Position numbers and translations under genes: made by a program
Notes under the pieces: generated by a model
Database searches by the model: none
What the model was told of the DNA's origin: nothing
The model's input: the letters and a program-made list of their open reading frames with translations, nothing else
Assembly: GCA_964036045.1 (NCBI GenBank)
Contig: OZ038378.1
Span: forward strand, 105,152,001 to 105,216,000
Length of the DNA: 64,000 bases
Direction of reading: 5' to 3'
Source: Eutreptiella sp. 'Long Island Sound 2002'
Lineage: Eukaryota > Protista > Euglenida
Shown: positions 17,435 to 36,100 of the stretch, piece by piece
Layout: the number at the start of each line of letters is the position of its first letter
How positions within the stretch are numbered: the stretch's first letter is position 1

Positions 17435-18070
17435 GCTATGTCACAGTGCGTCTAGCTCTTTTCGGTGAGTTGGCGGATATATTCCTTTGGCTACCACGCG
17501 TAGAACGCATAGCACGAAATTTTGTCGTGTTTTTGCTTTTATGATTGTTTTGTGCTTTCGGGGGGTTTTCGAGGGTGCCCGACGCAATGGAACTATCTGT
17601 TTAGCTCAATTCAACCTTCGAGGAGAGAAGCACAATTGCCTCCTGCCTCTGCCTCTGTCTTGGTGCTACGCGTGCTGTGTGTGTTGCGCGTCCTGCGTGT
17701 TTCGGTCCGGTGCCTCTGAGTCTGCCTCTGGAAGTCTTCCTACGCGTTCTACGCGTTTTGCAGGGGCTAAGCGCTTCACACCCATCATACCACCCCCGAT
17801 TTTTTTTTTTGCCATGCTTTCACCCGTGTACTCTGCCACACACCTGCACTGGTTCCCAATGGAACTGAAACCTGCGTATTCCAACGACAATTGCCTTCTG
17901 CCTATGTGTTTGCCTTGGTGCTACATTGCCCACGTGTGTTGGGTGTTTTGTGTGTTGTCGTTTTTCGCTTCTGACGTTGCCTCCGGAGCCGTTCTACGCG
18001 TGCTACGTGCTCTGCAGCATGTTTTTGTCCCAACATTCATAGGCCGCTTTGCTTTTATGGTGCAACAGCC

Positions 18071-20881
18071 ATGCCTGCACCCCTGTACCCCGCCACACAT
18101 TCTCAATGGTTGCATAAGGGTGGGAAGCTGGGAGACTGGGAGCATCCGGAGAAACTGAAGCACGACGCCTTCGTTGTCTTTCAAATTAGACAAGCCACGA
18201 GTATGTGTGTGTGTGTCTTTGTTTTCATCTCGCTTCTCGCCTTGCACCGTTGTCCTCCTCACCCCCTTGTGTCGCAGCGGGGTGGCATGCCGGATGGGTC
18301 AATCGGAAGAAGAAAGGGGCCAAGGACAAGCAGGAGAAAGAATTTTGGTTGACGAACCTCACAACGTATCAGGTGTACCACGTTCACGGGTTTGCGGTTC
18401 ATGTGACCACTATTTTGCGCTGCCTGTTGTCCCCTACCGCCTCTTGCACCCTTTCACAGGTCAAGGCCCCGAAGGGCAAGCCACATGCGCCGCATGTGGT
18501 GCAGGACGTTCGCAACAAGAAGGATGGCTACTTGAAATACAAAAAGGTGTTTTATGTGTTCTGCGCGTTTTATCCGTTCCCTTTTCCGTTGCCTCTGGAT
18601 CTGCCTCTGGTTGTGTGTTATGCCTTTTGCGCGTTCTTGGCGCTCTGCGTGCTTCCTCTGGTATTGCCTCTGGGGTTGCCTCCATGTGTCTTGCATGTTC
18701 TGTATGTTCTACAGATTCCGCGCGACCGGCTGTGGACGTGGATCCAAGATGAGGGAACCACGGAGAGTTCGGATGAGGACGAGTGGAAGAGGATTCGGAA
18801 GAGGAGCCGGAGGAGGCAAAGCAGGCGGAGGAGGAGGAGGAGGAGGAGGAGGAGGGCAGTGATGCTGCCAGTGTGAAGTACGAGGACGAGCCCTCCCTCG
18901 CCCAACGCGCACCCCGAAGCACCCACCTCACGGTGGTTGCCCGCATGGCCGCAAAGGGGACCCCTATGAAGGCGAAGCCAGAGGCAAAGCCAGAGGCAAG
19001 GCCAGAGCCGGAGGAGCTGTCCAAGAAGAAGAACGAAAAGACCAAGAGTCCACCCAAGAAGAAGAGCAGCAAGGGCAAGAAGGTGGAGGAGAGGCCCAAG
19101 CATGTGCGTTACGCAGTGGAAGGCGAACCGCACAGGACGATGCCCACAGGTGCAACCCGAGGGGAGAAGTACCAAGCCGGGGCTACCTACGACAACGATG
19201 TGCAGGTCATGCAGTGCACCCTGGAGTCGGAATACGAAGTGTCACTCGGACGAGTATGCCAACACTATAAAGTGTGTTTGGCCGAGGAAACACAAGCGCG
19301 CCGCGAATTGGGCCTGGCACTGCTTCTGGTGACGGACGTGCGGGCGTACAGTGTGCAGATGGTCCTCCGCTGTGGCACGAAGAATGCACAAAGCACAGCC
19401 GCTGCCAGAGAACTGTTTGAGGAGCGATACCCCAGCAGCTCACCCCGCCAAGTCGCCACCGGGTTGATCAAGGGGGTGTCGGTGTGCACGAACTGTGTCG
19501 AAGCCCCGGACAGGCCTACGGAATTTGGTGACCCCGCAGCTGCAGGCCTGCCGTTGGCGAAATTGAAGGGGGAGCCCCTGTCGTCTGGATACCGACCACG
19601 GCGCAGCATGGACCAGCTGACTGCGTTTGGTGCGGAGGGAATTGTCGACATGCCCACTAACACTTTGCAGGTGTACTGCATGTGTTGCGTGTTCCCTCTG
19701 TAACGCCTCCAGTGCAGCGTGTAGCGCGTCTTCGGCGTTCTGCACGTGCTACGTGTTCCCGACATTGCGCCTCTTCGTTGCCCCTAGGGGTGCCTTCCGG
19801 TGTTGCACGCGCTTTGCGTGGTCTGTACAAGAGAAGCTGTCGCGCATGGTCCGCATGGCTGGCCTCATGGCGTACACCTTAACGGAGGACAGAGGTGTCG
19901 ACCTCCCCGACACAGGGGCATGGACACTCGTGAGAAAACAAAGGATGCAAAGAGGCAGCGGGTGTGCATTCCTGTGCTGGGCGTCGTGGCTCGGGTCTTT
20001 TCACTTGCCTCTGGAGTTGCCTCCTGTCTGCTTTGGGCGTCCTACGCATTCTACGCGGTCTGCCCGTTCGATTCTGTGACTGCCTCTGGATTTGCCTTCC
20101 CATGTCTTACCTGTTTTGCGCGCTCTGCATGTTCTGCAGACAACCTGGGAGGAGTATGGGTATCCGCAGCAGCATGGGTATCCGTATGAGCCGCGATACG
20201 AGTATGAGCCGCTGTACGAGTACCAGCCGATGAAGACGGATCCGGAAATGCCTTCGAGCTCCGGGAGCCTCCCATATGGGTCCGACCCGTACAGGTACCG
20301 GCCCCAGGATTTTACGCCGCCACCCACGTATCCTCCACCGCAAGGAATGTTGCAACCACCGCCAACGCCGGGGATCCCACCAGCGCCAATACTCCCACCA
20401 CCCCAGCCACTGCCGCAAGGACCTCCGCCACCACCGCCACCGTCCGGGGAGCAGCAAGGCAGGCCGGAGATGGGGCCGGAGACGGGACCCCCGCACACGG
20501 AAGGTGCACAGGTGCGCGTTGCACATTAGTACTATGCGTTCTAGGGGATTGGCGTGTAGCCTCCGGGTGTGCCTCTGGATGCGAGCCCCGTGTTCTCCGC
20601 GTTCTGCGCCTTCCACACGTTTTCGTTTTGGTGCCTCTCGGATTGCCTCTGGAGGTGGGTTGCATGTTTCACGCGTGTTCCGTGTTCTGCAGCACCCAAT
20701 CAAAACGGAGCCGGAGGACGAGTCGACCGCGCCAATGGATCCACCGCAGGAGCCGGAGGCAGCCAAGGAAGAGAGCGCTGGGGCGCCGAAGAGCGATGCG
20801 GAAATGGGAGAGGAACCCCCGGAGGAAGCCGCAGTGGCGGGAGAGGAGATGGAGGAGAAGGACGAGATAGTGCAGATTTAG
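18071..20881 (+). CDS. Multi-exon accessory (cargo) gene of element A, unknown family; at least one frameshift
   Basis: GT-AG exons at approximately ..18200, 18278-18372, 18461-18546, 18715-19670, ~19790-19957, 20140-20511 and 20693-20881. The peptides align with element B (e.g. WHAGWVNRKK/WHAAWVNRKK; VLRCGTKNAQSTAAARELFEERYPSSS/VLRCRTKNAQSAAAAREYFEKRYPSSS). There is a frameshift near 18783, and the true start is uncertain. Confidence 0.75.
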
Positions 20882-21448
20882 TAAATCGGGCCGGCCTAAG
20901 TTGGAGCAGCCCAGGCAGCATTTTTTCAAACACACATGAGGGGGATGAGTGGCCCGACCCTGATGAGGTCCGCGGCAGACAAACCTCACAACCCCTCTTC
21001 TTTTCCAGGCCAGTGCCGTTGGCCCAGCAAGCACATTCACAGCCAACCCCTCAGTGGTGGCATCCGTAGGCGGCGCTTCCATTGGGGCACCGACGCCGGT
21101 ATTTATTGCGTTGTGAATACTTTTTCGACGTTCGGATGAATGGTGGCGGCTGCGGCCGCTGCTCTGCGTGGACCATGTAGGGTGCATGGGCACCGTTTCA
21201 AGAAAGCAACAATTGACTTGTTCGTGTTGCCGCCCCCATTGCCCCATCCCCTGTCCTTCGTGTGTTTCGTGTAATACGCGCTCTACGTGTCTGCTTCTGT
21301 GTCTGCCTCTGGAGGTCTTGTTACGCGTTCTGCGTGTGCTGCGCGTTCTGCACGTTCCGCTTTTGCTGCCTCTGCTGTTGCCTCTGGAACTGCCACTGGT
21401 GTGTTGCGTGTTCTACAGAGTCTCATTTCTCAACAATCTTTGTTTGTG

Positions 21449-23052
21449 ATGCCACCAAAATTTCAACCACCGCTGTACGACCATAGGCTCCCACGGGAGG
21501 ACTGTGCGGCCGATATCCAGTACGGTATCCGGCCCGGGGAATCCTGGCTCATCGGCTATACTGAGGACGAGGTTTGGGACCATATCATGGCCCCCATAGA
21601 GAATCTACAATGCCAAGCCCTACGGGACCACGGAAGGCCAGACCTGCTACCTCTAGTACCTAGGTACAATGCATTCTAATTCTATTGGGGATGGTGCGAC
21701 CAATGCAGGTGGACGGGTTTTGGGACCGCAAGGGCCTATTATACAATCCCTATATGGCAAACATGCTGACGCGTCGCCAATACTACTTGCTGCAACGGTT
21801 GCTACGTACCGATGTCGTCTCGCTACTGGAAGACTGCAATGGCCAATGGGCGGGAGCGTGGTGCATGGGGGGTGGGGCCTGCGGCGATGAGTCCGTGGTG
21901 CCCCACAAGGGGATGCTAGCGGGCCCCTTGAAAATGTTCATAGCCCGGAAACCGCACCCAACCGGGATAAAGTTGTATTGCCTGGCCGATGCAACATGGG
22001 GGTACGTGGTGGACCTGTATTTGTACACCGGTGTACGTGGCCGGCTACGCCGCTACGGCACTGCGGCGGGGAACTTTGATGCCAAAAACATCATGAAGTT
22101 ATGGGCATCATTGCTGCCCGAGGGGACGGTGCTATGTGCCGACTCCTTTTTCGGGTCCCACGGCCTTGCAAAGGAATTGGCCGCCAACAAGCGGGCATTC
22201 CTCATGATGACGAAGAGGTCCACGTACGGCGAGACATGGGCCGGGGAGCAGGTGCAGGAGGGGCAGACGGCGGTGTGCACTGTTGCGGATTTCAAGTACA
22301 GTCTGTGCACGTACAAGAATCCGAAGGTCGGGCACAAACCCCCCCGCGTTGTGCCGATGTTGACGAATGTGTGGTTTGCCCGAAAGGGACCACCTCACCG
22401 GCGAAGCGGGCGGGAAGTGCACCCTGTGGTGGCGGCGTACCGCACAGTGTCGCGCGGTGTCGATGGTGTGAACGAGATGGCCCTGCAGATGAGGCAGGTT
22501 GGCCGCCAGATGACATGGGCCCACGCGGTGCGTGCGTTCGTGCTCCGGTACGCGGTTGCGAATGTGTTCGCAACTTGCCGGCAATTGGGACTTTGCAAGG
22601 AGACCACTAGTATGTGGGAATGGCAATGGCAAGTGTTGCGGCGGCGGTACTTTGCCCACCCCCTACGACAAGAGGTACACGTGTCGGTGGCGACACAACG
22701 GCGGCGTGTGTGCCACTTTTGCAAGAGGGGAAGAACCGGCTATGAATGTACCGGTTGTGGAAAGGCATTCCACGTGTTGTGCTTTGCACCGGGACATGGC
22801 TATGGAGGTGTGCAAGGCGCACGGGACATGGAGGTAGACGAGGAGGACGAGGAGGTGTGGGAGGAGGACCATGAGGAGGACGAAGAGGACGGGGAGGATG
22901 AGGAGGACGAGGAGGACGAGGAGGACGAGGAGGACGAGGAGGACGAGGAAGGCGAGGAGGACGAGGAAGGCGAGGAGGACGAGGAAGGCGAGGAATACGA
23001 TGAGGATGAGGAGGACGAGGAGGATGAGGAGGACGGGGAGGATGAGGAGTAG
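21449..23052 (+). CDS. piggyBac-family (DDE_Tnp_1_7-like) transposase with Cys-rich finger and acidic tail; one 1-nt frameshift at ~21676
   Basis: Catalytic-type motifs GDESVVP, CADSFF and SRGVDGVN; KPHPTGIKLYCLAD; C-terminal CHFC..CTGC..FHVLC finger. The N-terminal 76 aa (ATG 21449) are in another frame, and one missing base relative to element B restores FIILLGM. Confidence 0.9.
22828..23049 (+). repeat. GAGGAC/GAGGAGGAC coding microsatellite (poly-Asp/Glu tail of transposase A)
   Basis: 9-bp and 18-bp periodic units read directly. Confidence 0.9.
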
Positions 23053-23095
23053 TGTGGTGGAATGGGGGGCTTGAACGAGACGATCATGGAGGCCG

Positions 23096-23177
23096 AGCCT
23101 CTGCTATCCCTACCCATGGGACCAGTGCGAACCCTGGGGGACAACCGCGTAGGCTGGATACCCAACTGTGAGGACGC
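23096..23177 (+). other. Conserved 82-nt non-coding 3' element of element A
   Basis: Differs from the reverse complement of 28642-28724 by 4 transitions and 1 indel. The changes are not codon-biased and one creates a stop. Confidence 0.75.
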
Positions 23178-23637
23178 GGCCCCTCCTCGATGTGCGCCCG
23201 TGTGCTAAGCGGCGTGCTGCGCATTCTGCGCGTTCTGCGCGGGCCGGTATTCCAATTCTGCACGTGCCTCTAGAGGCACGTGTTCGGCGTGCTACGCGTT
23301 CTGTGCGTGTTACTTGGTCTGTACGTGTTGTACGCGTTGTGCGCGCTCTACGCGTTTTCAAAACTTTACGTGCAACACCGTGGGCCACAGAAGCGCGCCT
23401 CTGGCCAGAAACTTACAGATGGTAGCCAAAGGAATATAGGGAAGGTACTGGACATTGCCCTTTCAAGTGCAAAAACTGTTGCGTTCTAAATGATGTCGAA
23501 AAGGAAACCCCGGTAATTTCTTCGTGCAAAGCGTGCAAGTGGAGAGGGACAATGGCAACGGTTTGCAATGGATGCTGGGGCGGGAGGGGGGGAGGGTTAG
23601 TTGGTTTGGTAGTCACCATTTTTGCCGGAAAGGTCGC

Positions 23638-23752
23638 TGAAAGGGGGTTGCAACGTTGGAGTGGGACGGTCTTCCGCACAGAAAGGGGGACGCAGTCTAG
23701 CGGTAGAAGGGGGGGTTCTAGCATTAGAAGGGGGTTCCAGTTGGGGTTCCAG
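23638..23752 (+). repeat. AGAAGGGGGTTC motif array
   Basis: agaaggggggttctag/agaagggggttccag units. Confidence 0.65.
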
Positions 23753-24750
23753 TGCCTATTCCAAGTCTCCAAGTGTTTTACATGGACAAGGCTGTGGTAG
23801 CCTTCGTGCAAGCACTCCCACCCTTAAGGGCCTATTCGCAATTGAAGGACCATGCCCAATGTCATGTTACCATGTACCCTCCTTTGCTGTTCAAGGAGAA
23901 ACTGCGTGCACCAGTCTTTGGCACACCTTGGAAGGTAAACCCGCTGTCCTATGGTTGGGTAATTTTCATAGGCGTAACTTCCGGCCTGTGCCTGGTAATG
24001 AGAACCGGTCCCTCAATTGTACAGCCGGTGCTATCATACTCTTGAAACGACCTGCTGACGTTATGCCGCCTTGTCTCTCGGTTTTGCGGCAGAGGATTGG
24101 GTACACTGCAGATTTCTTGGTGCAGAGCCATAAAAACTTCATTGATGGCTTGCAAGGGTTGATGGACGACCCCATCCGCCTTCAACATGTTCGTTGTCCC
24201 TTGGACATACGACGGGCTAATGTTACCAGCCCAGCTTGGACCCCCTTTTTTTCTAACAGACCTAACTGTGTCCGCCACCCCTGACCTTGTCTCTATTATT
24301 CACGGTCTCCAGGAGGTGCAGCAGCACACACAACACCGTCTTCCACTGTTGGTTGACGAAAACATACACTAACGAGTTCTTTGAACAGCTAGCGGCGTAT
24401 GTGCAGGAGATGGACTATGTCTACTTGGTTAACTGGGACGCTTGGATGCCAAGGATTAGGGTTTGTATGCCAGTTTTGGTGCAGAGGCCGGGGGACGGGG
24501 AGGATGAGGAAGGGGGGGACGATGTGGAGGAAGAGGAGGAGGAGGAGATCGTGCTGGTCGGAGGTAGTGACAGCAAGAAGAGGAGCACGCCCAGCAAGAA
24601 GAAGCCGTGCTCCGAGGACAGTGGGGATGAGGATGATGGCCCCCCCAAAAAGCCAGCCAAAAAGGCCAAGGACAGTACCCCCCTCAGTACGTTCCACGCC
24701 AATGTGGGACAAGGGCAAGAAGGCTCCCCCGAAGAAGAAGTAGACTGCGT
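23752..24750 (+). pseudogene. Degraded orphan gene with acidic and Lys-rich C-terminus
   Basis: Overlapping ORFs 23752-24045, 23622-24284 and 24287-24868 (..GEDEEGGDDVEEEEEEE..KKRSTPSKKK..PPKKPAKKAK). Confidence 0.3.
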
Positions 24751-24867
24751 TGCGCGCTCATCACTGCCTGTGTCTTTGTCGGTATTTGTTTTCGACTCGA
24801 TTTGCCAACTGTTGCGCATCGTGTTCTACACAGGTGTGAGACTGGTGCCCTTTTTCATGTTTTGGTA

Positions 24868-26222
24868 AATTTGGGCGCTGCAGTGCCCAAATTCATCCAC
24901 TCGCCATTTTTTTACCGCTGTTGCGCCATTTCTTTTGTAGGCATTGTTGCCCTCATTTATTATTGCATTGGCTGCACTGGCGGCGCCTCCATTGCTTGTT
25001 GGCTGCACTGGTAGTGCATTGTTTCTCACTCTTCGCATACCATCACAGTGAATGGGTCAGTAGCAGCTGTAACAAAAAACAAACCAAGATTTTGCATGTG
25101 CTTGCCTGTCATCATCCTTGCTTCATGTTTTAGGTTGCATTTAGCAGCGTCGTTTGAAATGCACCAGCGGATGACATGGAACAATTGGATTTTTCTTCGG
25201 ATGGACACTGCAGTGCCCAAATTTCAAAGGAATACATGAATTTTGACTGGCACATGTGGTACCCCCTACACACAATCATTTTGGATAATTCAAAGGCTTT
25301 TAGGGGTGTTCCTTGCAGACCATGTGAGCCAAACACCTACGTTGCACACCCCTCTTGGGTTGGACACCTATAGCCCTCTTGGAACGTGGACCACACCTGT
25401 TGTGTAGAACAGACCATATATTAAAAAACTCTTGCTCGGCAACACGGAACCAAGTGTCCAGCAGACAATTAACGGTACGCTTGTCCCTTTGTTGGATGTA
25501 TTCGCCAACGGACCGCCTACTTCTCCACTCGAACCGGAGATCCAACACCCACGTACAAAACTCATCGGCACCCTTATCCCTACCCCTAGCCTCAGATAGA
25601 TCCTCCTTTGAAGCATATACCTTCGAAATGAGGAACTGCCGGAAGGGAGCCGCATCCATGGACAAAAGTGCTATTTGGTGGCAGCAAAGGTAAAGGGACA
25701 AAGAAAATAGAGGCACCATCACAAAACAAACCTGATGCGGCATAGTTCAAATTCAGCCAGCGAAGATCCAAACAATGTATCCCCCAATGGATGTGCAACA
25801 TTCCAAAGCCTGGGTACACTCCAAGGTGGCAGTCAGACAACCGGCAATATATTTCCAATGAGCAGCGGATGAGTACCAACGGCCGATGAGTCATACGTCC
25901 TTCGTCAGATGATACGGAATGGGAACCAACAGGAGTGAAATGCGGAGTTTGAAATTTTTCGGGCACTGTAGTGCCCAAAAGTAGTGGAAGTCCATTTTCA
26001 AGTGCATATTTGGACAGGAATGGAAGTGATTGGGCAAGGTACATTGTATGTGGCCTTCCGAGTATAACACCGCCGTGCGATGACCCATTCATGACCGGTA
26101 TGCCAAGTTTTGATGCCTGCTGCTGCAGTAGGACATTACCTGTGGAGATGACTACAGAGGTGTACTGGAGAACCCAGTGAAAAAAGTCATTTCAATTTTT
26201 TGGGCACTGCAAAGCCCAAAAA
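24868..26222. repeat. Four dispersed copies of the palindrome (T)TTGGGCACTG|CAGTGCCCAA(A)
   Basis: 24868-24893 (26 bp, 1 mismatch), ~25202-25223, ~25956-25980 and ~26197-26222. Confidence 0.75.
25300..26180 (-). pseudogene. Probable intron-containing degraded gene, unknown family
   Basis: Coding-like minus-strand blocks (WVLQYTSVVISTGNVLLQQQASKLGIPVMNGSSHGG..; GRMTHRPLVLIRCSLEIYCRL..; FLISKVYASKEDLSEARG..LLDTWFRVAEQEFFNIW) separated by AT-rich stretches. Confidence 0.3.
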
Positions 26223-26999
26223 TTTTAGATGATACCAATTTCAGCCTGGAATAGGAGGTGTATATGTGCACCTCTGGGAGCAACTAAAGGCGAGGTTGTT
26301 GTGTCCCACGCTGAAAGTACACGTGTAGTTGGCCCAAAAAATGGTATGCTTTTTTGGGTGCACAAAACGGATGTTAACATCGCCATGAATTGTGCTCTTT
26401 AGCAACGAAGTCTACGTGCGTAAAGGGCCGCCTAAGTTAGGCGCCCATGGACGCCTGAGGGCGACACCTTTGGCAACTAACTGTGGGCCGAAGGCCCCTA
26501 GGGGGGGGGGGGGGTGCAGGGGTAGTTGGCGTCCTAGGATCCGCGGAGTCGCCCCTTCCGTGACCAAGAGAGCAGTTCAACATAACACCGCTCCCCCCAG
26601 GATTCATGGTTGCACAGTCCGAAAGCTCGGCCACCAAATTCAAACACATTCATGCAATTCCCGTGAAATTCGCATGAATGAGCATGCACCGCCACATGCT
26701 AGCACAAAGGTGAACATGTCGTGGATACGAATTTCGCACCAAATTGGTGCAAACTTGGTTGAAACTTTGCAAAGTTCACAGATGCCACACAATCTCCACC
26801 TCACTTGTCGTGGCTACCTTTGGCCTAGCCGCCGTCCCCCCCGTGGCTGGCCATCCCTTGGCCACTCTGAGGGCTCACTAGCCCCTCGATAGCACCAAGA
26901 AAAGCGGTGCCTGGGGCATTTTCGAGTTCGAGGTCAATTGCTGCACTAGCAATACAAGCGGGGTGTAGTGTCCCAGCACTGCCGCCTGTGCGTCCATTG

Positions 27000-27558
27000 T
27001 GGGCTGCACTTGCGGCGGGACATCGTCAAAGGACACATTTTGCCCAAACTTTTGCAACAACAACTGAACGACCCCAAAGGCCACAAACCTCCGCTTGGCG
27101 CATCTATGCCTATGCACTTGCAGGCAGAAAAAGCATGCCCTCAGGCTTGGTGGAGGAGGTTGGCGGTTGGGGGGAGGAATAACGCGCTCTGCTTGCTTTT
27201 CCTGCTTTGCCTTCCGCCCTACACGGGCACAAGGCTACTCCTTCAAGGCATCCACCCGACCCTAGAGCAGGTCCGTGTCCCGTTCGGCAACCCTATGCGC
27301 CACCACGGCCACAATTGTCTCCCCCCTCGACACCTCAAGTTGCTTTCGCAGGCGCTCCAACTCCACCTGGGCATTGGTGTGCTCCTCGGACTGTTGCTCC
27401 TGTTTTTGCCGCACCCATTGGGTGATGTCACGATGCTTGCGGGGCTGCTGTCTGACGTCGGATGGGCGGTCATCTTTGGGGACTGTCCTTGGCCGGCGAG
27501 GAGTACGGAGTCGGCTTGGGCTATGCCTCTTGCCCGCTGCCCCGTATGACCTACTCAT
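27000..27558 (-). pseudogene. Coiled-coil, gag/ORF1-like remnant
   Basis: ORF 27262-27558 (QKQEQQSEEHTNAQVELERLRKQLEV) continues through stops; composition evidence only. Confidence 0.2.
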
Positions 27559-28641
27559 TTCGTCATCATCCCCATCCCCCCCCCCGGCCTACGTGATTCC
27601 CCTGCCTTGCATGGCGGCGCATGCATAGCCATGCATTGCCCGGTCAATTATCATTACGTGCCCCCCAATGCCTAATGGATTGGGGAGCAAAACACCAGCT
27701 TGATGGAGAATCTGCCTATCCCCCCCCCCGCCCCCCGGACGATGAATGGCTGCGTCCAACTTTCTAGTGGCCACCCGTGAGGCGGTAGCCAAAGCGGGCC
27801 ACTAAAGCCTTACCCTCCGCCGCCCACCCCAAGACAACACCCTCCTTCATGGTTACCGGGTGGGAGAAAATGATGTTGTGGGGGGCTTCGCCTTCTCGGA
27901 TGGGGTGGTGACACTCAAACTCCAGGCCGCAGCCAACAATTACTTCGATCCCTCCTCCCTTGGGGGCACAAGTGCCTTCCATGCATGTGGTGTGGCTTGG
28001 TGTGGGAAAACAGTCCTTTTGTCGAATGCTCGGTTGTTGTCGCCCGTGGCCCCAGTGCCATGATTGGGCATGGGGATGACATGGCTTGGGGATTAAACCC
28101 GTACCGGGGACCAGACTGGGCGCCGGGCTGGGGCCCGGACTGCAACACCGGTTGGGGCCCCAACTTGGACTTGATTGGGGTGCTAGAGATGTTGTCCCGC
28201 AGTGCATGGCCTGTGTTTGGGTGTACTTGGATGATGGGCTTGGACTGCTTCTGAGCTTTGAAGGAACCCGCGTGGGGGCTCAGGCGATTGAACTACTCCT
28301 GTGAGAGGTATGCAATAATCTTGTGAATTCGTGCATAATTAGTGCGAAATTCATGGTAGTGTACTAACAAGGCTAGATTCAAAATGTTCCATTGTCTACA
28401 GAGGGGACGTTTCTGTCCGGGAGCGCTCTGCGCGGCACAATAGGTGCCGCGCGTGTTGCTTCATTACACGCAGCCCGCGCAGCACGTGGACAAAGCAAAA
28501 AACACACGCATAACGCGCATAACCGCAAAACGCGCAGCACGGCGTTCGACACGCACACTTAGAAACAGACTTCCGGCACGCGCAAAACGCGTAGCACGCG
28601 GAGCACGTCACTATTGCACACGCGCGCACTTTTGGGGGGCG

Positions 28642-28724
28642 GCGTCCTCACAGTTTGGGTATCTAGCCTACGCGATTGTCCCCCAGGGTTCGCATTGGTC
28701 CCATGGGTAGGGATGGCAGAGGCT
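28642..28724 (-). other. Conserved 83-nt non-coding 3' element of element B
   Basis: Counterpart of 23096-23177. Confidence 0.75.
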
Positions 28725-28780
28725 TGGCGGCCATGAACCCCAAGATTCCACCACGTCCGCCCTCCACCACCTTCCCCTTC

Positions 28781-30114
28781 CTAATCTTCGTCACCCTCCA
28801 TGTCTTCGTCTTCTTCCCCGTCACTCTCCTCCTCCTCCTCACTCTCTTCCTCCTCATCCTCCTCCCCCTCCTCCTCACTCTCCTCCTCCGTGTCATCCTC
28901 ACTCTCCTCCCTCTCGCTTCCATCGTCCTCCGCCTCTTTGCTCTCCTCGTCCACATCCGCCTCTACCACCCCGGTCACCCCATGTGCCACGGCAAAGCAC
29001 CCCACATGGTACCAGGTGCCGCACCCACAACAAACGTAGTGGGTCTTGCCCCAGTTGCAATGGTTGCACACGCGGCGGCCCGGCATCCGCACCGGCATGT
29101 GGATGGGCTTGGCCACTGCCACTTTACAAAAGCGCCGCCGGATAAGGTCCCACTGCCAGTCAAACATGGTACCCGTTCGGCCCCAACCGAGGGACCGGCA
29201 AGTCGCGTATGCGTTGACCACGGCATACCGGAGGACAAACACACGCACCGCGTGTGACCAGGTCATCTGACGTCCCATGTGGCGCATCTGGAGGGCCATC
29301 TAGTTGACGGCATCCACCCCACGCGATAGCTGGCGGTAGCTGGCGACCACTGGGTTCACCTCATTCCCGCTGCGGCAATGCACGGGTCCGGCTTGTGGGA
29401 AGTGGACGTTAGTGAGCATTGGCACTACGCGGGGTGGCTTGTGAACCACCTTTGGGTTCTTGAAGACCACCATGGCGTACCTCGCGTCGTCCACATTGCA
29501 CGTGGCGGTTTGCCCCTCTGCTAGCAGTTGTCTTGCCCTGTCCACCCCGTACGTGGAGCGATTCGTCATCGTCAAGAAGGCGTGCCTCCTCGCAGCCCGA
29601 TCACGCGCTAGTTCGTGCAATCCAAAAAAGGAATCCGCATAGAGGATGGTCCCGGAAGGGAGGAGACCTGCCCACATGGTCATGATCCGTTGGGCATTGA
29701 AGTTGCTTGCACTGTTGCCAAACCGCTGCTGGTGCCCGCGTCTGCCCGTGTACAGGTACTTGTCCACCACGTACCCACTAGGGCATCGGCAAGGCAATAG
29801 AGCTTGATGCCGGTTGAGTGGGGCTTGCGGGCGATGAACATCAGTATTGGGCCGGCACGTATGCCTTTGTGCGGCACCACGGACTCATCGCCACATGCCG
29901 CGCCACCGAACCGCCATGCACCAGGCCACTGCCCGTTGCACTCTTCCGGTAGCTCAACAACGTCGGGCCGGATGGTACGGCGCAAGACGTAGTACTCCTT
30001 GCGGCTTAGGAATTGTGCCATGAAGGGGTTGTATAGTAACCCGTCCCGTTCCCAGATGCCATCTACTGCCATGGGTCGTACCATGCCTAGTAGGAGGATG
30101 AAGGCGTTGTACTT
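28781..30114 (-). pseudogene. piggyBac-family transposase pseudogene of element B
   Basis: GDESVVP, YADSFF and SRGVDAVN motifs, a CNHC..CCGC..YHVGC finger and an acidic tail. It has a frameshift near 29780, a premature TAG at 29300-29302, and the N-terminal ~60 codons are deleted relative to A. Confidence 0.9.
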
Positions 30115-30199
30115 ACGGAAATGGGAGCCACCGCTCGAACGGGGCGGATTGTAGAGGCACAACACAACCATATGGGTATGACGCGCAAACAACAGTGGC

Positions 30200-33130
30200 A
30201 CCACAACGCGCACCTGCTCACCTGCCGGACCACCATTGCCCCCTGCCGAGTTCTCCGCACCCGCTGCGGCGCCTTCTGCGGCGTCCTTGGGTCCTTGTTC
30301 GGCCTTCTCACCTTTGGTCTCTCGGGGAAGCTTGTGCACAACGCGAAAAACGTGACGTCTCTCTTCCAAAGGCAACGCGGAGGCACGACACGTAGGACCT
30401 GCAAGACGCGTAACACGAGCAACACAGAGCACATCGGCCTCTAGAGGTGAAGAAGAAGCACACGTGGAGAACACCCAGCACAACAACCTGCTGCTCCTCC
30501 ATGGCACCGGCGCTAGTTCCTTCCGTTCCGCGAGGGGGCTGATTGTCCCGCGTCTCGTCGGTCTCCTGCGGATCCTGTGGAAACGCAAGGGGGGCAACCG
30601 AGGTGCAAAACATTTGGCAAACGAGACCGGGGGTCCACATACATGTGACTCACGGCTCCGTACAAACCACGCATTGAAAGCCGCAACGGAGGACGTACGA
30701 TCGCGTTGGGTCCGCACCCGCCCACGCACCTTCTTGATCTGTGCCACATCGGTGAACGGGCCAAGCAGCTCCTTCGGTTGAAGCTCCGATGGCTCGGACG
30801 TTGCGAAGGGGGGCGCGCCATAGGGCGGAGGAGCTGGGGGGGGGGGGGGGGGGGGGCAGCGCGCCATGCGGCGGAGGCGGGGGGGGGGGGCGGCAGCGGC
30901 GGAGAGGGGTGCCACTGCGGGTCTTGATGGTAGGAGTGTTGGGGTTGACGGTGGGCATGAGGGGGCGGGTACTGTGGTGGCGGGGAGGGAAGGTGCGGGT
31001 ACCCGCTCATGTGAGGGGGCTCCCAATCCCAAGGGGCAGTGTGCACAACGCGTAGCACGGAAAGACCTCCTCGAGAAGCGTACATAGAATCATACGTGCA
31101 AGACGCATAAAACGCGCATCACGCGACGATGGACCTCCAGAGGCGGAGCGGAGGCAACGTCACGCACACCACCGACACCACAAAGCACGCAAATACCCGC
31201 GGATTTTCTTCCCCGTCAGCTCTCGGGTGCGCACCAACGACCATGCTCCGGACGCCGGCAGTTCGAGGTTCCGTTCCTCTTCCAATTCGTACGCCATCAG
31301 GCCGGCCATCCGGATGAACCGGACCACCCTCTCCTGCTGAACGCGGAACACCGGGATTGTCAGCGGCACGCTAGAAGCAAACGCGTGGAACGCGCGGAAC
31401 GCGCATAACGCGCGGCACGACGTTGCAGAAGCACAACAGAGGCCCTGTGCAACACCTGCAAAACATCCGTTTCCATGTCAACAATGTCTTCAATGCCCAT
31501 TGCGATGACCCGATCGGCCCCGCCACCTCCATGACCACTTCGCGGGCCTCCATCTTCAGCTTGGCCAGACTGATACCCTCTGATGGCGGGCTGAGGTCCA
31601 CCGGCCGTTGGGGTGCGGCGGCGCAACCCGTACAAACCAAAAGGCCCTTCAAAATCCCCTCCGCCACTTGCCGCAGGCTACTCGAGGGATACCGTTTTTC
31701 GAAATACTCGCGGGCTGCTGCCGCCGACTGGGCGTTCTTGGTCCTGCATCTCAGCACGCTTTGCACGCTCGGGGGCTCGACACTGGTGTGCAGCAGAACT
31801 GCCAAACCGATCTCTTGCATGGACTTGGGTTCCTCCGACCAGCAGTCCTTGTAGTGCACGACCAATCGGCCCAAACTCGCACTGAAGTCCTCCTCCAAGA
31901 TTTTCTGCATTGTGTCCACATCACGGTCGTACCCGCCCTCGAGCTGGAACTTCTCTCCTCTTGTCGGTGCGGCGCTGATACTCTTCTGCGGGCCCTTTCC
32001 GGCAATCGCAAAGGACACGTTACCACGGGACACCTTGGCTTTGGCCTGCTTTTTCTTGGGCATCTCCGCCTCAGACTTCTTTGGTGGCACCTTGGGCGGG
32101 CTCTGCTGCTCTGACTTCCGCTTCTTCTTCTCTGCCATTGTGTGTGGCTCCTGCTTGACTTCCAGCACGGTGGACCGTGCTGCCTTCGCGGAAGAAGAAG
32201 ACCCTTTCTCCGGCATAACGGGGTCCTGTGGGTTGTCCTCGTTGGCCCCTCCTCTTGTTTCGGCTTCTTCAGGGCGCGTCGGGCCTGCTTCTTGCCATGG
32301 GCTGTCTCGTCGTCCTCTTCCTCCTCAGTCTCTTCTTCCTCCTCCTCCTCTCCGTCGTCTGCTGATGCCTCCTCCCCCTCTTCCTCCTCACTCTTGTCCT
32401 CTTCGCTCTCCAACTAGGTCCACAAACGGTTCTGTTGGATCTGCAGAACACGCAGCACGTGTAGCACGATGGCGGCGCCCCTAGAGGAGGAATGAGAGGT
32501 ACATCACCGGAACGCACAGAACGCGCAACACGGGAACACACGTATGACACGGGGCAGACTCACTCACAGATGCAACACGCAGCCCGCGCAACACAACCTT
32601 TGTGTACTCGAACCATCCATCCGTCTTGGCGCGGCAATCTTGGACTTTCGCGGGAGCGCGCGGCTTTCCTTTCTTCGTCTTCATCTGCAGGCAGCAAAGT
32701 TAGGGAGGGGGTTAAGCAGCTTACTGATAATGGGCAGTGGGGACGGTGCGAACATACGAAACAACATGGCACGTGTCATGCATGGATGTTTGATATGCGG
32801 CCACGTTGGTGAGGAATATCTCATCCTCTCCGCAATCCCGGCTGCCGACCTTCTTGCGGTTCACCCAGGCTGCGTGCCAACGGGCTATGAAGAAATGTGT
32901 GGCACGGCCCTAGAAGCAGAAACAAAAAGGCGAAACGAACGGCATCGACGTGGGAGGCATCAAAAGGCACAACACCCGCACTCCACCCCGTTGAACAATC
33001 AACGACATGTCTGTTGTTTGATCTCGAACACGATGAACGCGATTTCCTTCAGCGTGGCCGCGTTCCCCCAACTGCCCAAGCGGCCCCCCTTGGCAAGCCA
33101 CTGCTTGTGGCTGATCGGCAAAAGGGGTAC
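30200..33130 (-). pseudogene. Multi-exon accessory gene of element B (paralogue of the A cargo gene)
   Basis: Exon peptides HKQWLAKGGRLGSW..AFIVFEIKQQT, RWHAAWVNRKK, KGKPRAPAKVQDCRAKTDGWFEYTK, NRLWT*, TRGEKFQ..RYPSSSLRQVAEG, IRMAGLMAY and a Pro-rich exon; intron positions match A. Confidence 0.75.
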
Positions 33131-36100
33131 GGGCAAAAAGAAAAGGCCGAGGTATAGGAGGACGCGTAGCTCGCGCAAAACGTGGGTTCCGGCCTCCAGA
33201 AGCATGGTGTTCGTTACGCGCGGCACGCGGAGCACGCCCTGCACGGATATGCAACACCTTTTATTGGGTCTTCAGAGGCACACCTAGAATCAAACGCTTA
33301 GAATGCGTAACACGCGTAACACGCGCGGCACATGAAGCACGAAAGCCATGGTAGAGGCAATGGCACGATACGCTCCTCACATGGAAAACGGTGGGAATGA
33401 ACAAAATGGATGCTTCCACGAGGTCCGGCACGTTCGAAAACCCCCCGGAACAACAAAACTTTATAGATTCATTTTTGACGGACAAAAAACGTTGATTCCG
33501 TTCTGCGCGTGGTGGACAAAGGAACATGGTGCATTGATGGAAATTCATGCTCATCTTGTGCAAAATTCGCGTGAAAATAGCAAGCACTGTGTGCACTTCA
33601 ACGTCTGCGAACAGGATTGTGTAGGGCATGTGATGGACCACAGCCCCGATTTCGCCTTCTTTGGGGGCCTTGAAGTAGGCGCAACGTTGTTGAGTTGGCA
33701 TGCCATTGTAGGGCAAGTTCGTGGGAGGACATAGCCAACGGCAAAGCGGACACTAGCATCTGCATCCATGGTGCCGGTTTTTTGAACCTCGAGCTGGTAG
33801 GGTCCCCACTTGCCCACACGTTCCCCAACTCGGAATTGGGCGACGTGTGGGCTACTATGGGAGAGGAACGCGGGGTGGAATACGCAGGTGGAAGCGACAC
33901 TTGGCTCCTCGGGGTTGAAAAATGGTATCGACCATATCCTTGTTAGCGACCCCAACTATTGCCTCAACCCCCTTGCCCAACCACATCACCTGTTGCAAGT
34001 TGGCACCAGCTGTTGATCTAGGGTAGCTGTGACTGCCTTTGCGGCCCCGCTCCCCCACACGGGTAGGGGGTCAAGATGAGTTGCATTCTTGTTTATGAGG
34101 AAGTGATGCTTGTCCGGTGACCACTATGTACATGTCACTGCTTGGTGTGGCAGACCATTTTTTTTGGGGGGGGGGAGATGCCATGTTGCCGAGATGTGGA
34201 CGCATCGACAAGGGAATCACCCTTGGACGGAGGCAACTCATGAAAATGTGTCTCGCTGACGTAACGCAGTAACGGTGAGTGGAGCCGTTGTGGAGTTCAA
34301 TGCGAAACTGCGGGCATAATACCGAAAAAATTGACAAATGGCATTTAGAAAATTGGCCATCACTGGGGGGGCAATAGATAAGGGTCACCGCAGTTGTCGG
34401 TGTGGTCATGCTGATCTGCGGTATCCGTGATATCAATGGCTGGGGCCGGGGTCATATGGTACCGATCTGCAACCCCACCAACATTCCCGGGCAGTCTGTC
34501 CAAAAATGTCTTAAAACTGCCGACGCACATGGCGGTGGAGGTGCGGACCTTCGATTCCCGGCGTTGGGGCAGCTCTGGAGATATCAGGCACTTATGGCTA
34601 GGCCGACGTGGGAAAGGGCTATAATGGCACGTTAATGCTTGGAAAAACATCCAGAAAGGGGCAACCCATCCACAAAAGCGTTTGCGAGAGGAGGGGCATC
34701 TTGTCCTCGTGTAGTGGGGGATCGGGTGTGGCATACACAGGGGGCAGTCAAGCAAGGGGCTCTTACGGAGGGGGGACGAAGGGGTTGGGGACTGTCAAAC
34801 CTTGATACGAGGCTTGGGAATTGGTGGTCTACAACGTGGGGGTGATGAGGTTAGAAAGGTGGTGTTCAGGGCCAAACCATGGGTGGGTGGGGGTGATGGC
34901 AAGATCCTCCCACCTGCTTGGCTGGAAGATATGCCATCGGAAGGGGAGGGAGGAAGGCTCTTCCTTTTCAAGAGTGTTAAAGTCCTCAAGGCCGACTATA
35001 TAATATCGTAGCACACGGGGATGGTAACAAGGTCGTCAACAGGGTACACCTTGCACAGTCCCTCCTTGTGCTTACCCTACCCTTGCCCTCCATAATCCCC
35101 AAAATAGGTTCCACAGTCTTCTCCCGTGGGATAAGGCTAAGTGCTAAAATGCCCATAATAGCCCCATGGAGCCCCAAATACACACGTGGGGCCCAACCCT
35201 AACGCAATAAACTTGACTGTGATGCGAAGGACCCATGTCAATGTGCACTACCGCAGGGTGATCTTGCTCTCCCGCCTATTTCACAATGGCCCCATGGGCT
35301 GCACTGTCGTCATAGGTTCATTGTCTGACACCGGGTGTCAACCCACATGGGCCAGGATCGAAAAGATCTTTGAGTAGGGGAAAGACAAGATCGCCAAGCA
35401 TTTGGACAAGATTTTTAACTTGGTTCACCTGCCGCCTAAGCAACTCAAAACATCGCAAGCCAATTTGACGCTGTCTCAGAGATGGGCAATTGTGCCCGTG
35501 CCTAAAATGCGTCACCCGAAAAACGGGACAAATGGGGTGGTCTGACTATCAGCGAGTATTTAGTGACCAATGAGTTGCGGCTTCCAATAGGAACCTTGCG
35601 TTGGGACGATTCACCCCGTGTGAATCGTCTTTTTGAATCTAGGTCGTCTTTGACCAATTTTCGACACATTCTTTGTGTTGTGCCCGCGTGCGATGCTCAC
35701 TTCTTCTCAAATTCAGGAAATTTAAGTCCTTCAAAAATGCACTTTGGTATTGTGTTCACTTTCACAAGGCGATCCGAAAAAAAACATTCACATCATCATT
35801 CGCACGTGCAATCAAAGTGCCCTCACATGATTTAGGCATACGGTTTTGGGAGTGGGTGTTGGCGGCGGGATGTGATATGGACCGTAGCTGAGACAAGCGT
35901 TGGGACAACAGCAAGTAAAGCTCAATCACGCATTGGTAACAATGTGCGAGTTCTGGGAAGCACATGTGACATGAATGAAAGATTCGTGCAATTCGTGAGC
36001 AATTCGTGCTACACTTGTGCGAAATTCACCTGCCGCCCCACACTCTCCTATGAGTTGGAGCCTGGTGACGTTCGACTCCAATGACCTCTCCCTTGGGGGC

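Follow-up and report, generated by a model that had tools for sequence, protein, structure and literature searches.

We analysed a 64,000-nucleotide stretch of the genome of Eutreptiella sp. 'Long Island Sound 2002' (contig OZ038378.1, positions 105,152,001 to 105,216,000), hereafter the window, and found that it holds two copies, A and B, of a piggyBac-superfamily element, arranged tail-to-tail (open reading frame (ORF) listing, Pfam matches and self-comparison). Both have the same order of parts: an end repeat, a multi-exon gene that we call the cargo gene, a DDD transposase gene, a conserved 3' element and a second end repeat. Our reading of the stretch as a whole, held with moderate confidence, is that A and B are two dead copies of a multi-copy, two-gene family whose upstream gene is under selection and would assist the transposase in trans, as its partner. 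We consider it very probable that the cargo is a genuine second gene that belongs to the element and is under selection; that it serves as a partner of the transposase in transposition is a tentative proposal, made by analogy.

Structure of the cargo gene

The cargo gene of A lies on the forward strand and comprises seven exons, all bounded by GT-AG; it opens with an ATG at 18071 and closes with a double stop at 20879. Exon 1 (18071-18200) starts at this ATG and ends in phase 1 at a GTATGT donor, exon 2 (18278-18372) encodes GWHAGWVNRKK..., and exon 3 (18460-18546) is followed by exon 4 (18715-19670), which encodes the end of the N-terminal domain, the acidic and Lys-rich linkers and the conserved Cys/His core and which has lost one nucleotide at 18784. 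The RMAGLMAY motif is encoded by exon 5 (19834-19929), whose donor is ambiguous, a Pro/Tyr-rich region by exon 6 (20140-20511) and an acidic tail by exon 7 (20693-20881), which ends with a TAG at 20879-20881 followed by a TAA. Splicing of the same seven exons in the sister copy L001, which has the base missing at 18784, gave an open frame of 639 amino acids, and splicing of nine GT-AG exons in the B-type copy L002 gave an open frame of 690 amino acids; these are the seven-exon and nine-exon forms of the A-type and the B-type, respectively. The cargo remnant of B lies on the reverse strand at 30214-33136, with exons at 33136-33007, 32884-32790, 32684-32598, 32440-31456, 31333-31235, 31040-30730, 30574-30488 and 30333-30214, the ninth being deleted.

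Nucleotide identity between A and B was 67% over the transposase gene, and their introns could not be aligned. At the protein level the two copies share colinear blocks (three short N-terminal ones, the long exon with the strongly conserved core, the RMAGLMAY block, the Pro-rich block and the transposase), and a stretch of 82 nt that is 91% identical follows the transposase block. The cargo protein blocks quoted in a first-pass annotation of this DNA were present in both copies, and the phase-1 intron that it had described, with an acceptor 5 nt before the W-H codons, was found in A and B as well.

The positions and phases of introns 1 to 5 are common to the A-type and the B-type (L002). A distal donor that would lengthen exon 5 by about 12 codons also preserves the frame in L001 and L002 and is a better fit to the intron-less types. 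Types 3 to 5 of the cargo lack intron 4, so that the end of exon 4 and exon 5 are uninterrupted, and type 5 also lacks introns 1 and 2, exons 1 to 3 being uninterrupted. The uninterrupted coding of these types is colinear with the spliced exons of A and B and thus gives independent support to the exon junctions; it is from such comparison that we infer the splicing of the cargo. Two extra introns were seen in the C-terminal part of the B-like copies (L002 exons 7-9). The intron content of the cargo varies between types (L002 exons 7-9; L005:5544-5900; P0133, P0177 and P0165), which reflects gain or loss of introns within a transposon gene.

Selection on the cargo gene

The ratio of non-synonymous to synonymous substitution rates (dN/dS) was estimated on the pair L002 and L007, chosen for its unsaturated dS of 0.26. 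The cargo core of this pair differed by 14 non-synonymous and 24 synonymous changes, which gave a dN/dS of 0.16 (p=3e-7); over the whole cargo the ratio was 0.38 (p=5e-9), and over its N-terminal part 0.37. A coarser scan that took in every frame gave about 0.8-1.3 for most wrong-frame ORFs, and a few went down to about 0.5-0.6. Between the A-like and B-like cargo the dN was 0.37 (N-terminal part) to 0.42 (core) with dS saturated, and the ratio between these types was dropped as a measure of selection for this reason. The substitution pattern indicates that the cargo is under purifying selection in the transposon lineages; a ratio of about 1, which the first-pass annotation had set against its own proposal, was not what the divergence between lineages gave.

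Copies of the family and co-inheritance of the two genes

The family is present in many copies, with hundreds to thousands of contigs matching A in DNA runs. A protein search with the exon-4 ORF of A returned 138 ORF clusters, all of them from one ENA assembly (ERZ25074135), in which the A-like group was 70-94% identical and the B-like group about 50% identical to the query. A search of 1.84 billion representative proteins with a cargo profile gave 71 matches, including at least four further, much more distant types, and all ten matches that were looked up came from long ENA contigs. Among these 1.84 billion representatives no cargo relative was found outside the one assembly, and a pattern scan of JGI metagenome contigs found none either. 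One JGI metagenome contig of 1.2 kb (P0229) encodes a transposase 44% identical to that of the family and is too short to show the presence or absence of a cargo.

Individual loci were then read. Three loci picked as distant cargo types (L004, L005 and L006) hold a cargo and, downstream of it and equally oriented, a piggyBac-type transposase, both of them between ATATTCCTTTG...CAAAGGAATAT ends and accompanied by the 3' element; a fourth picked in the same way (L003) has a cargo without a transposase. When loci were picked by the transposase alone, a full cargo was present in three of four (L007, L009 and L010); the fourth, L008, has an intact transposase of 519 amino acids preceded only by the N-terminal exons of the cargo and its acidic tract. 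In L004, L005, L006, L007, L009 and L010, the cargo precedes a transposase of like orientation and lies between the same ends as that gene, and it has been kept in this position in at least six deeply diverged lineages whose transposases are 30-65% identical. Pairwise identities of the transposase (0.30-0.95) and of the cargo core (0.28-0.93) sorted the copies into the same groups. The two-gene form is the common state of the family. The first-pass annotation had proposed a conserved, spliced accessory gene long retained with the transposase, and had allowed for its absence from most members; the open frames, the constraint on the core and this retention agree with the proposal, and most lineages keep the gene.

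The surroundings of the sister copies (L001:2683-4848, L003:13786-15038 and L002:13270-15353) are dense in mobile-element genes, among them a PIF1 helicase, a Helitron-like N domain and a reverse transcriptase.

These results bear on the possibility that the cargo is a passenger, that is, a host gene that an ancestral element took up on one occasion and that has no role for the element. The cargo has no known function or homolog, and derivatives without most of it are abundant, as would be expected of a passenger. However, it is under purifying selection in transposon lineages and occupies the same place in lineages as diverged as those above, no copy of it was seen outside a transposon context among the loci read, and the 1.84 billion representative proteins contained no relative from outside the one assembly. 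No origin from an ordinary host gene, which the first-pass annotation had also considered, was found, every locus read being in a transposon context. We regard the passenger explanation as very improbable.

Deletion derivatives

Two types of deletion derivative were distinguished. The L002 type (L002:5944-10450) has an intact cargo of 690 amino acids and no transposase; there are 59 members in its exon-4 ORF cluster. In the L008 type (L008:5679-about 8950), the intact transposase of 519 amino acids is accompanied by a cargo reduced to the Sm-like N-terminal part (see below) and the acidic tract. Both look successful and abundant. Since abundant derivatives without either gene exist, an element does not need the full cargo in cis, and any role of the cargo would be exercised in trans; derivatives lacking either gene are compatible with supply of the missing protein from other copies.

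Transposase and ends of the element

The transposase gene of A (21449-23052, forward strand) encodes a DDE_Tnp_1_7 domain, a C-terminal Cys-rich part and an acidic tail, with the frame lost at 21673. That of B is a remnant on the reverse strand (28781-30115) without about 65 N-terminal codons and with a frameshift and a stop. The gene is intronless. Pfam DDE_Tnp_1_7 (PF13843) was matched with an E value of 4.4e-18 by A and of 7.2e-20 by L001, and the structure of the Trichoplusia ni piggyBac transposase (PDB 6x67) with an E value of 1.8e-6. In an alignment of the family member P0207 with 6x67, the motifs GDET, GDSFF and GVDS matched IDEQ, CDNWF and GVDT, which contain all three catalytic aspartates (D268/D346/D447), and the same catalytic motifs were found in the ORF of A (CGDESV, CADSFFG and RGVDGVN). 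The C-terminal part of the A transposase has the Cys/His pattern CHFCKRGRTGYECTGCGKAFHVLCF, where only sub-threshold PHD-like Pfam matches were obtained. These motifs and matches place the transposase in the piggyBac superfamily, as a DDD enzyme.

Element A belongs to the A-type and lies on the forward strand; it is full-length but decayed and extends from 17479 to 23437 with the flanking ATAT included, as defined by alignment with L001 and by reading of the ends. L001 is 96.4% identical to A and aligns to it over exactly this interval; because the match stops there, the ends of A are fixed at 17479 and 23437. The 5' terminal inverted repeat, TCCTTTGGCTACCA, is located at 17483-17496 and is preceded by ATAT at 17479-17482; the 3' terminal inverted repeat, TGGTAGCCAAAGGA, is located at 23420-23433 and is followed by ATAT at 23434-23437. 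These 14-nt ends are perfect, 23420-23433 being the complement of TCCTTTGGCTACCA. Element B (28384-33527, reverse strand) belongs to the B-type; it is decayed, with an internal deletion, and has degenerate end repeats and ATGT and ACAT flanks at 33527-33524 and 28387-28384, respectively. ATAT adjoins the TCCTTTG...CAAAGGA ends on both sides of A, L001, L002, L005, L007 and L009, and the TTAA target-site duplication that is the trait of piggyBac was not found at the ends of these six copies. The flanking tetranucleotide may be a target duplication or a part of the end repeat, the latter because the ATGT and ACAT flanks of B are inverted rather than direct. Between the two elements, at 24287-24868 of the window, there is an ORF of 193 amino acids with acidic and Lys-rich tracts (EEEEEE... 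and KKPAKKAK).

Decay of the two copies

The first-pass annotation had described A and B as two complete copies with a shared architecture. The shared architecture was observed in both, but neither copy is complete; A and B are both dead, non-functional copies. In A, the cargo frame is broken in exon 4 by the loss at 18784, behind which the other copies have an extra C, and the transposase frame is broken by the loss of one nucleotide at 21673, a base that is present in the other copies (DNA runs). In B, the start codon of the cargo has mutated to TTG, an in-frame TAG is present at 32417-32415, the frame changes near 32300-32250 and three splice sites are lost; the transposase frame shifts near 29776-29797 and is interrupted by a stop at 29300-29302. 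Compared with L007, a full-length B-like copy, B has a deletion of 1,107 bp that took away the last cargo exon, the spacer and the 65 or so N-terminal codons of the transposase. Divergence between A and L001 was even, at 2.4-3.9% in exons, introns and non-coding parts alike, and their dN/dS was 0.78 for the cargo and 0.81 for the transposase. We read a ratio of about 0.8 between near-identical copies as neutral decay of dead copies after insertion, not as absence of function.

Non-coding parts of the element

The conserved non-coding 3' element is located at 23084-23180 in A (forward strand) and at 28640-28736 in B (reverse strand). This sequence, about 95 nt long and a short way behind the transposase stop, is almost invariant in A, B, L002 and L004 to L010, even though the transposases are only 30-65% identical. 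In DNA runs it was covered 5-8 times as deeply as the remainder of the element, so that it is common to many more copies or families. It matched no Rfam family and showed weak covariation only.

The motif GCG[TC][TG][CGT]T[GAT]C had a density of 0.5-1.8 per 100 nt in introns 3-6, in the non-coding regions at the two ends of the element and in the spacer that precedes the transposase gene, the intron-like stretch up to 21418 included, and was absent from the cargo exons; the background of the window was 0.027 per 100 nt, about 20-60 times rarer. In A, arrays of GCGTTCTGC-like motifs with a period of 9 nt were found at 17661-17760, 18547-18714, 19671-19833, 19930-20139, 20512-20692, 21259-21418 and 23212-23360. 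These arrays could serve as binding sites.

The array at 21259-21418 (forward strand) resembles an intron and may be spliced; it closes with an AG acceptor, 30 nt ahead of the transposase ATG. The distance from the cargo stop to this ATG is only about 570 nt, with both genes in the same orientation. Such an arrangement would suit one transcription unit, in which the cargo and the transposase are both made from a two-gene precursor by alternative splicing or by leader trans-splicing and the cargo is one arm of a splice switch, as in En/Spm. Yet in A the first cargo exon, which ends in phase 1, is out of the transposase frame and meets a stop when it is joined to the 21418 acceptor, and the cargo ends in a double stop codon of its own. 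L008 was also scanned for a donor and acceptor pair joining cargo exon 1 in frame to an acceptor before the transposase ATG, and none was seen. This explanation, which we find improbable, concerns expression, and a conserved protein of 640 amino acids would still need to be explained.

Domains of the cargo protein

The N-terminal domain was modelled with AlphaFold2 on an intron-less type-5 sequence (L005:5544-5900), with the exon pieces of other types as rows of the alignment. The model (predicted local distance difference test (pLDDT) 81, predicted template modelling score 0.70) has a short helix (H22-27) followed by five long, bent strands. The top 50 Foldseek matches and nearly all of the top 30 VIA-align matches were Sm/LSm proteins, the latter with a Z of up to 7.7 and a root-mean-square deviation of 2.0-2.5 Å over 60-72 residues, and an Atlas shape search with the same model also returned LSm families. 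We therefore propose, with moderate confidence and on the strength of a model, that the cargo begins with an Sm-like beta-barrel. Members of the Sm/LSm group (the Sm core, LSm1-8, EDC3, Scd6/TRAL and Gemin6/7) share with the modelled domain the helix and the five bent strands and superpose on it with a Z of 6-7.7; in contrast, the domain of the cargo lacks the Sm1/Sm2 signature and its strands are longer. An Sm-like domain followed by long low-complexity regions is a likeness to EDC3, Scd6 and ataxin-2.

An acidic tract and a Lys-rich tract resembling a nuclear localization signal (NLS) separate the N-terminal domain from the core. In the core, residues invariant over six types include three cysteines (C..., C-x2-3-C), and an H-x3-C lies upstream of them in the types where that part is readable; this suggests a metal site, possibly one that binds zinc. 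An AlphaFold2 model of the core (pLDDT 44) was too poor and was not used for fold searches. Downstream of the core are a conserved D.VDM...RTV.AG..Y motif, a Pro/Tyr-rich region and the acidic tail. No Pfam domain, Myb/SANT included, was found in any part of the cargo. The Pro-rich exon (window 20290-20440; L002:8560-8700) has PPxY/LPxY-like motifs, with PPPTYPPP in the A-type and three PPPLPYGAPP repeats in the B-type; elsewhere, motifs of this kind are ligands of WW-domain proteins.

An Sm-like fold would also suit a cargo that acts on RNA or against the host, its N-terminal domain binding transcripts of the element or the small-RNA or decay machinery of the host and so tuning expression or blunting silencing. 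The confinement of the element-specific motif to introns 3-6 and other non-coding parts such as the stretch before the transposase, with none in exons, and the retention of just the Sm-like domain in the abundant short L008 derivative are in line with such a role. However, the fold match is weak, Sm sequence motifs are absent, and Sm-like barrels are also modules that bind proteins or ligands. We consider a role at the RNA level unlikely.

A possible partner of the transposase

We return to the role proposed for the upstream protein, that of a transposase partner acting in trans. A dedicated partner protein, for anti-silencing, targeting or regulation, had also been suggested by the first-pass annotation. 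The role of the upstream protein might be in nuclear import, in recognition of the ends or of the motif arrays, or in assembly or control of the transposition complex, by analogy with the second proteins of PIF/Harbinger (ORF1), En/Spm (TnpA) and MuDR (MURB). We favour a partner role because the cargo has an NLS-like tract, a possible zinc module and a barrel of a nucleic-acid type, and because the motif arrays are potential sites.

Several observations weigh against this reading. All data come from one assembly. The transposase ORF cluster of the L008 type is the largest, with 119 members, and, given this type, the full cargo might not be needed at all. Clean splice joints were absent from the matching run contigs, in which exons and introns were covered alike, including those of one RNA-labelled run. 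The Z of the Sm match remained below 8, a level that the tool rates as common or modest, and no Pfam family, and hence no LSM family with the Sm1/Sm2 motifs, was matched by L005:5544-5900 at E values up to 1. Relatives of the core outside the family were found neither in Pfam, nor with a PDB sequence profile, nor in an ESM Atlas feature search, nor in a hidden Markov model search of the 1.84 billion representatives. With neither a detectable homolog nor a confident fold for the core, the case for a partner role is one of analogy, which makes the role plausible.

A stronger form of the proposal is a true two-component piggyBac, with the cargo as a cofactor that is obligate and specific to the element. 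The motif arrays, in subterminal DNA or in intron pre-mRNA, would be read by the Sm-like domain and cysteine core of the cargo, which would bring the transposase to the ATAT-flanked ends. Derivatives with only the cargo and those with only the transposase would then show mutual complementation in trans. We hold this form to be doubtful.

Comparison with known systems and significance

PiggyBac is among the best-studied eukaryotic cut-and-paste transposons; it is widely used as a genome-engineering tool and treated as a one-protein system. The canonical element of Trichoplusia ni and the present family have in common the DDE_Tnp_1_7 domain, the three catalytic aspartates as aligned with the structure 6x67, possibly the C-terminal Cys-rich part, and short terminal inverted repeats with a palindromic flank of 4 nt. 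They differ in that this flank is ATAT here and TTAA in the canonical element, which consists of a transposase only between short repeats, whereas a second, spliced gene for 640-690 amino acids is found upstream here, together with a near-invariant 95-nt 3' element and with motif arrays in introns and subterminal regions.

PIF/Harbinger elements are likewise cut-and-paste elements with a second, co-inherited protein gene beside the transposase. The second protein of Harbinger, the Myb-like ORF1, is needed for nuclear import and end binding; the cargo has a Lys-rich, NLS-like tract but no Myb/SANT or other Pfam domain, and the transposases belong to different superfamilies. En/Spm (CACTA), with TnpA/TnpD, and MuDR, with mudrA/mudrB, also encode two proteins and have subterminal arrays of short repeats, which in En/Spm are bound by the second protein. 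They have no sequence relation to the present family, in which the two frames are separate, each with its own stop, and the motif arrays extend into the introns.

In the literature that we searched on piggyBac in Euglena and on piggyBac elements with a second ORF, we found no family with a conserved second gene; the only case with extra genes was Teratorn, a 41-182-kb fusion of piggyBac and a herpesvirus in teleosts (PMC6431247). Teratorn is similar in being a piggyBac-type element with additional genes, but it carries a whole virus, whereas the element described here is 5-6.7 kb long with one dedicated extra gene.

A second, selected, spliced gene is unusual for a piggyBac-type element, and two-gene cut-and-paste transposons are already known in other superfamilies. 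In the lineage described here, a second selected protein has been kept through deep divergence, together with a flank other than TTAA. The family would supply an example of a transposon gene that gains and loses introns, and a natural system for complementation between cargo-only and transposase-only derivatives. It would also supply a new family of proteins of about 640-690 amino acids with an Sm-like domain, a candidate for end recognition, nuclear import or self-regulation. If our reading is true, the piggyBac superfamily can evolve a two-protein lifestyle like that of Harbinger or En/Spm.

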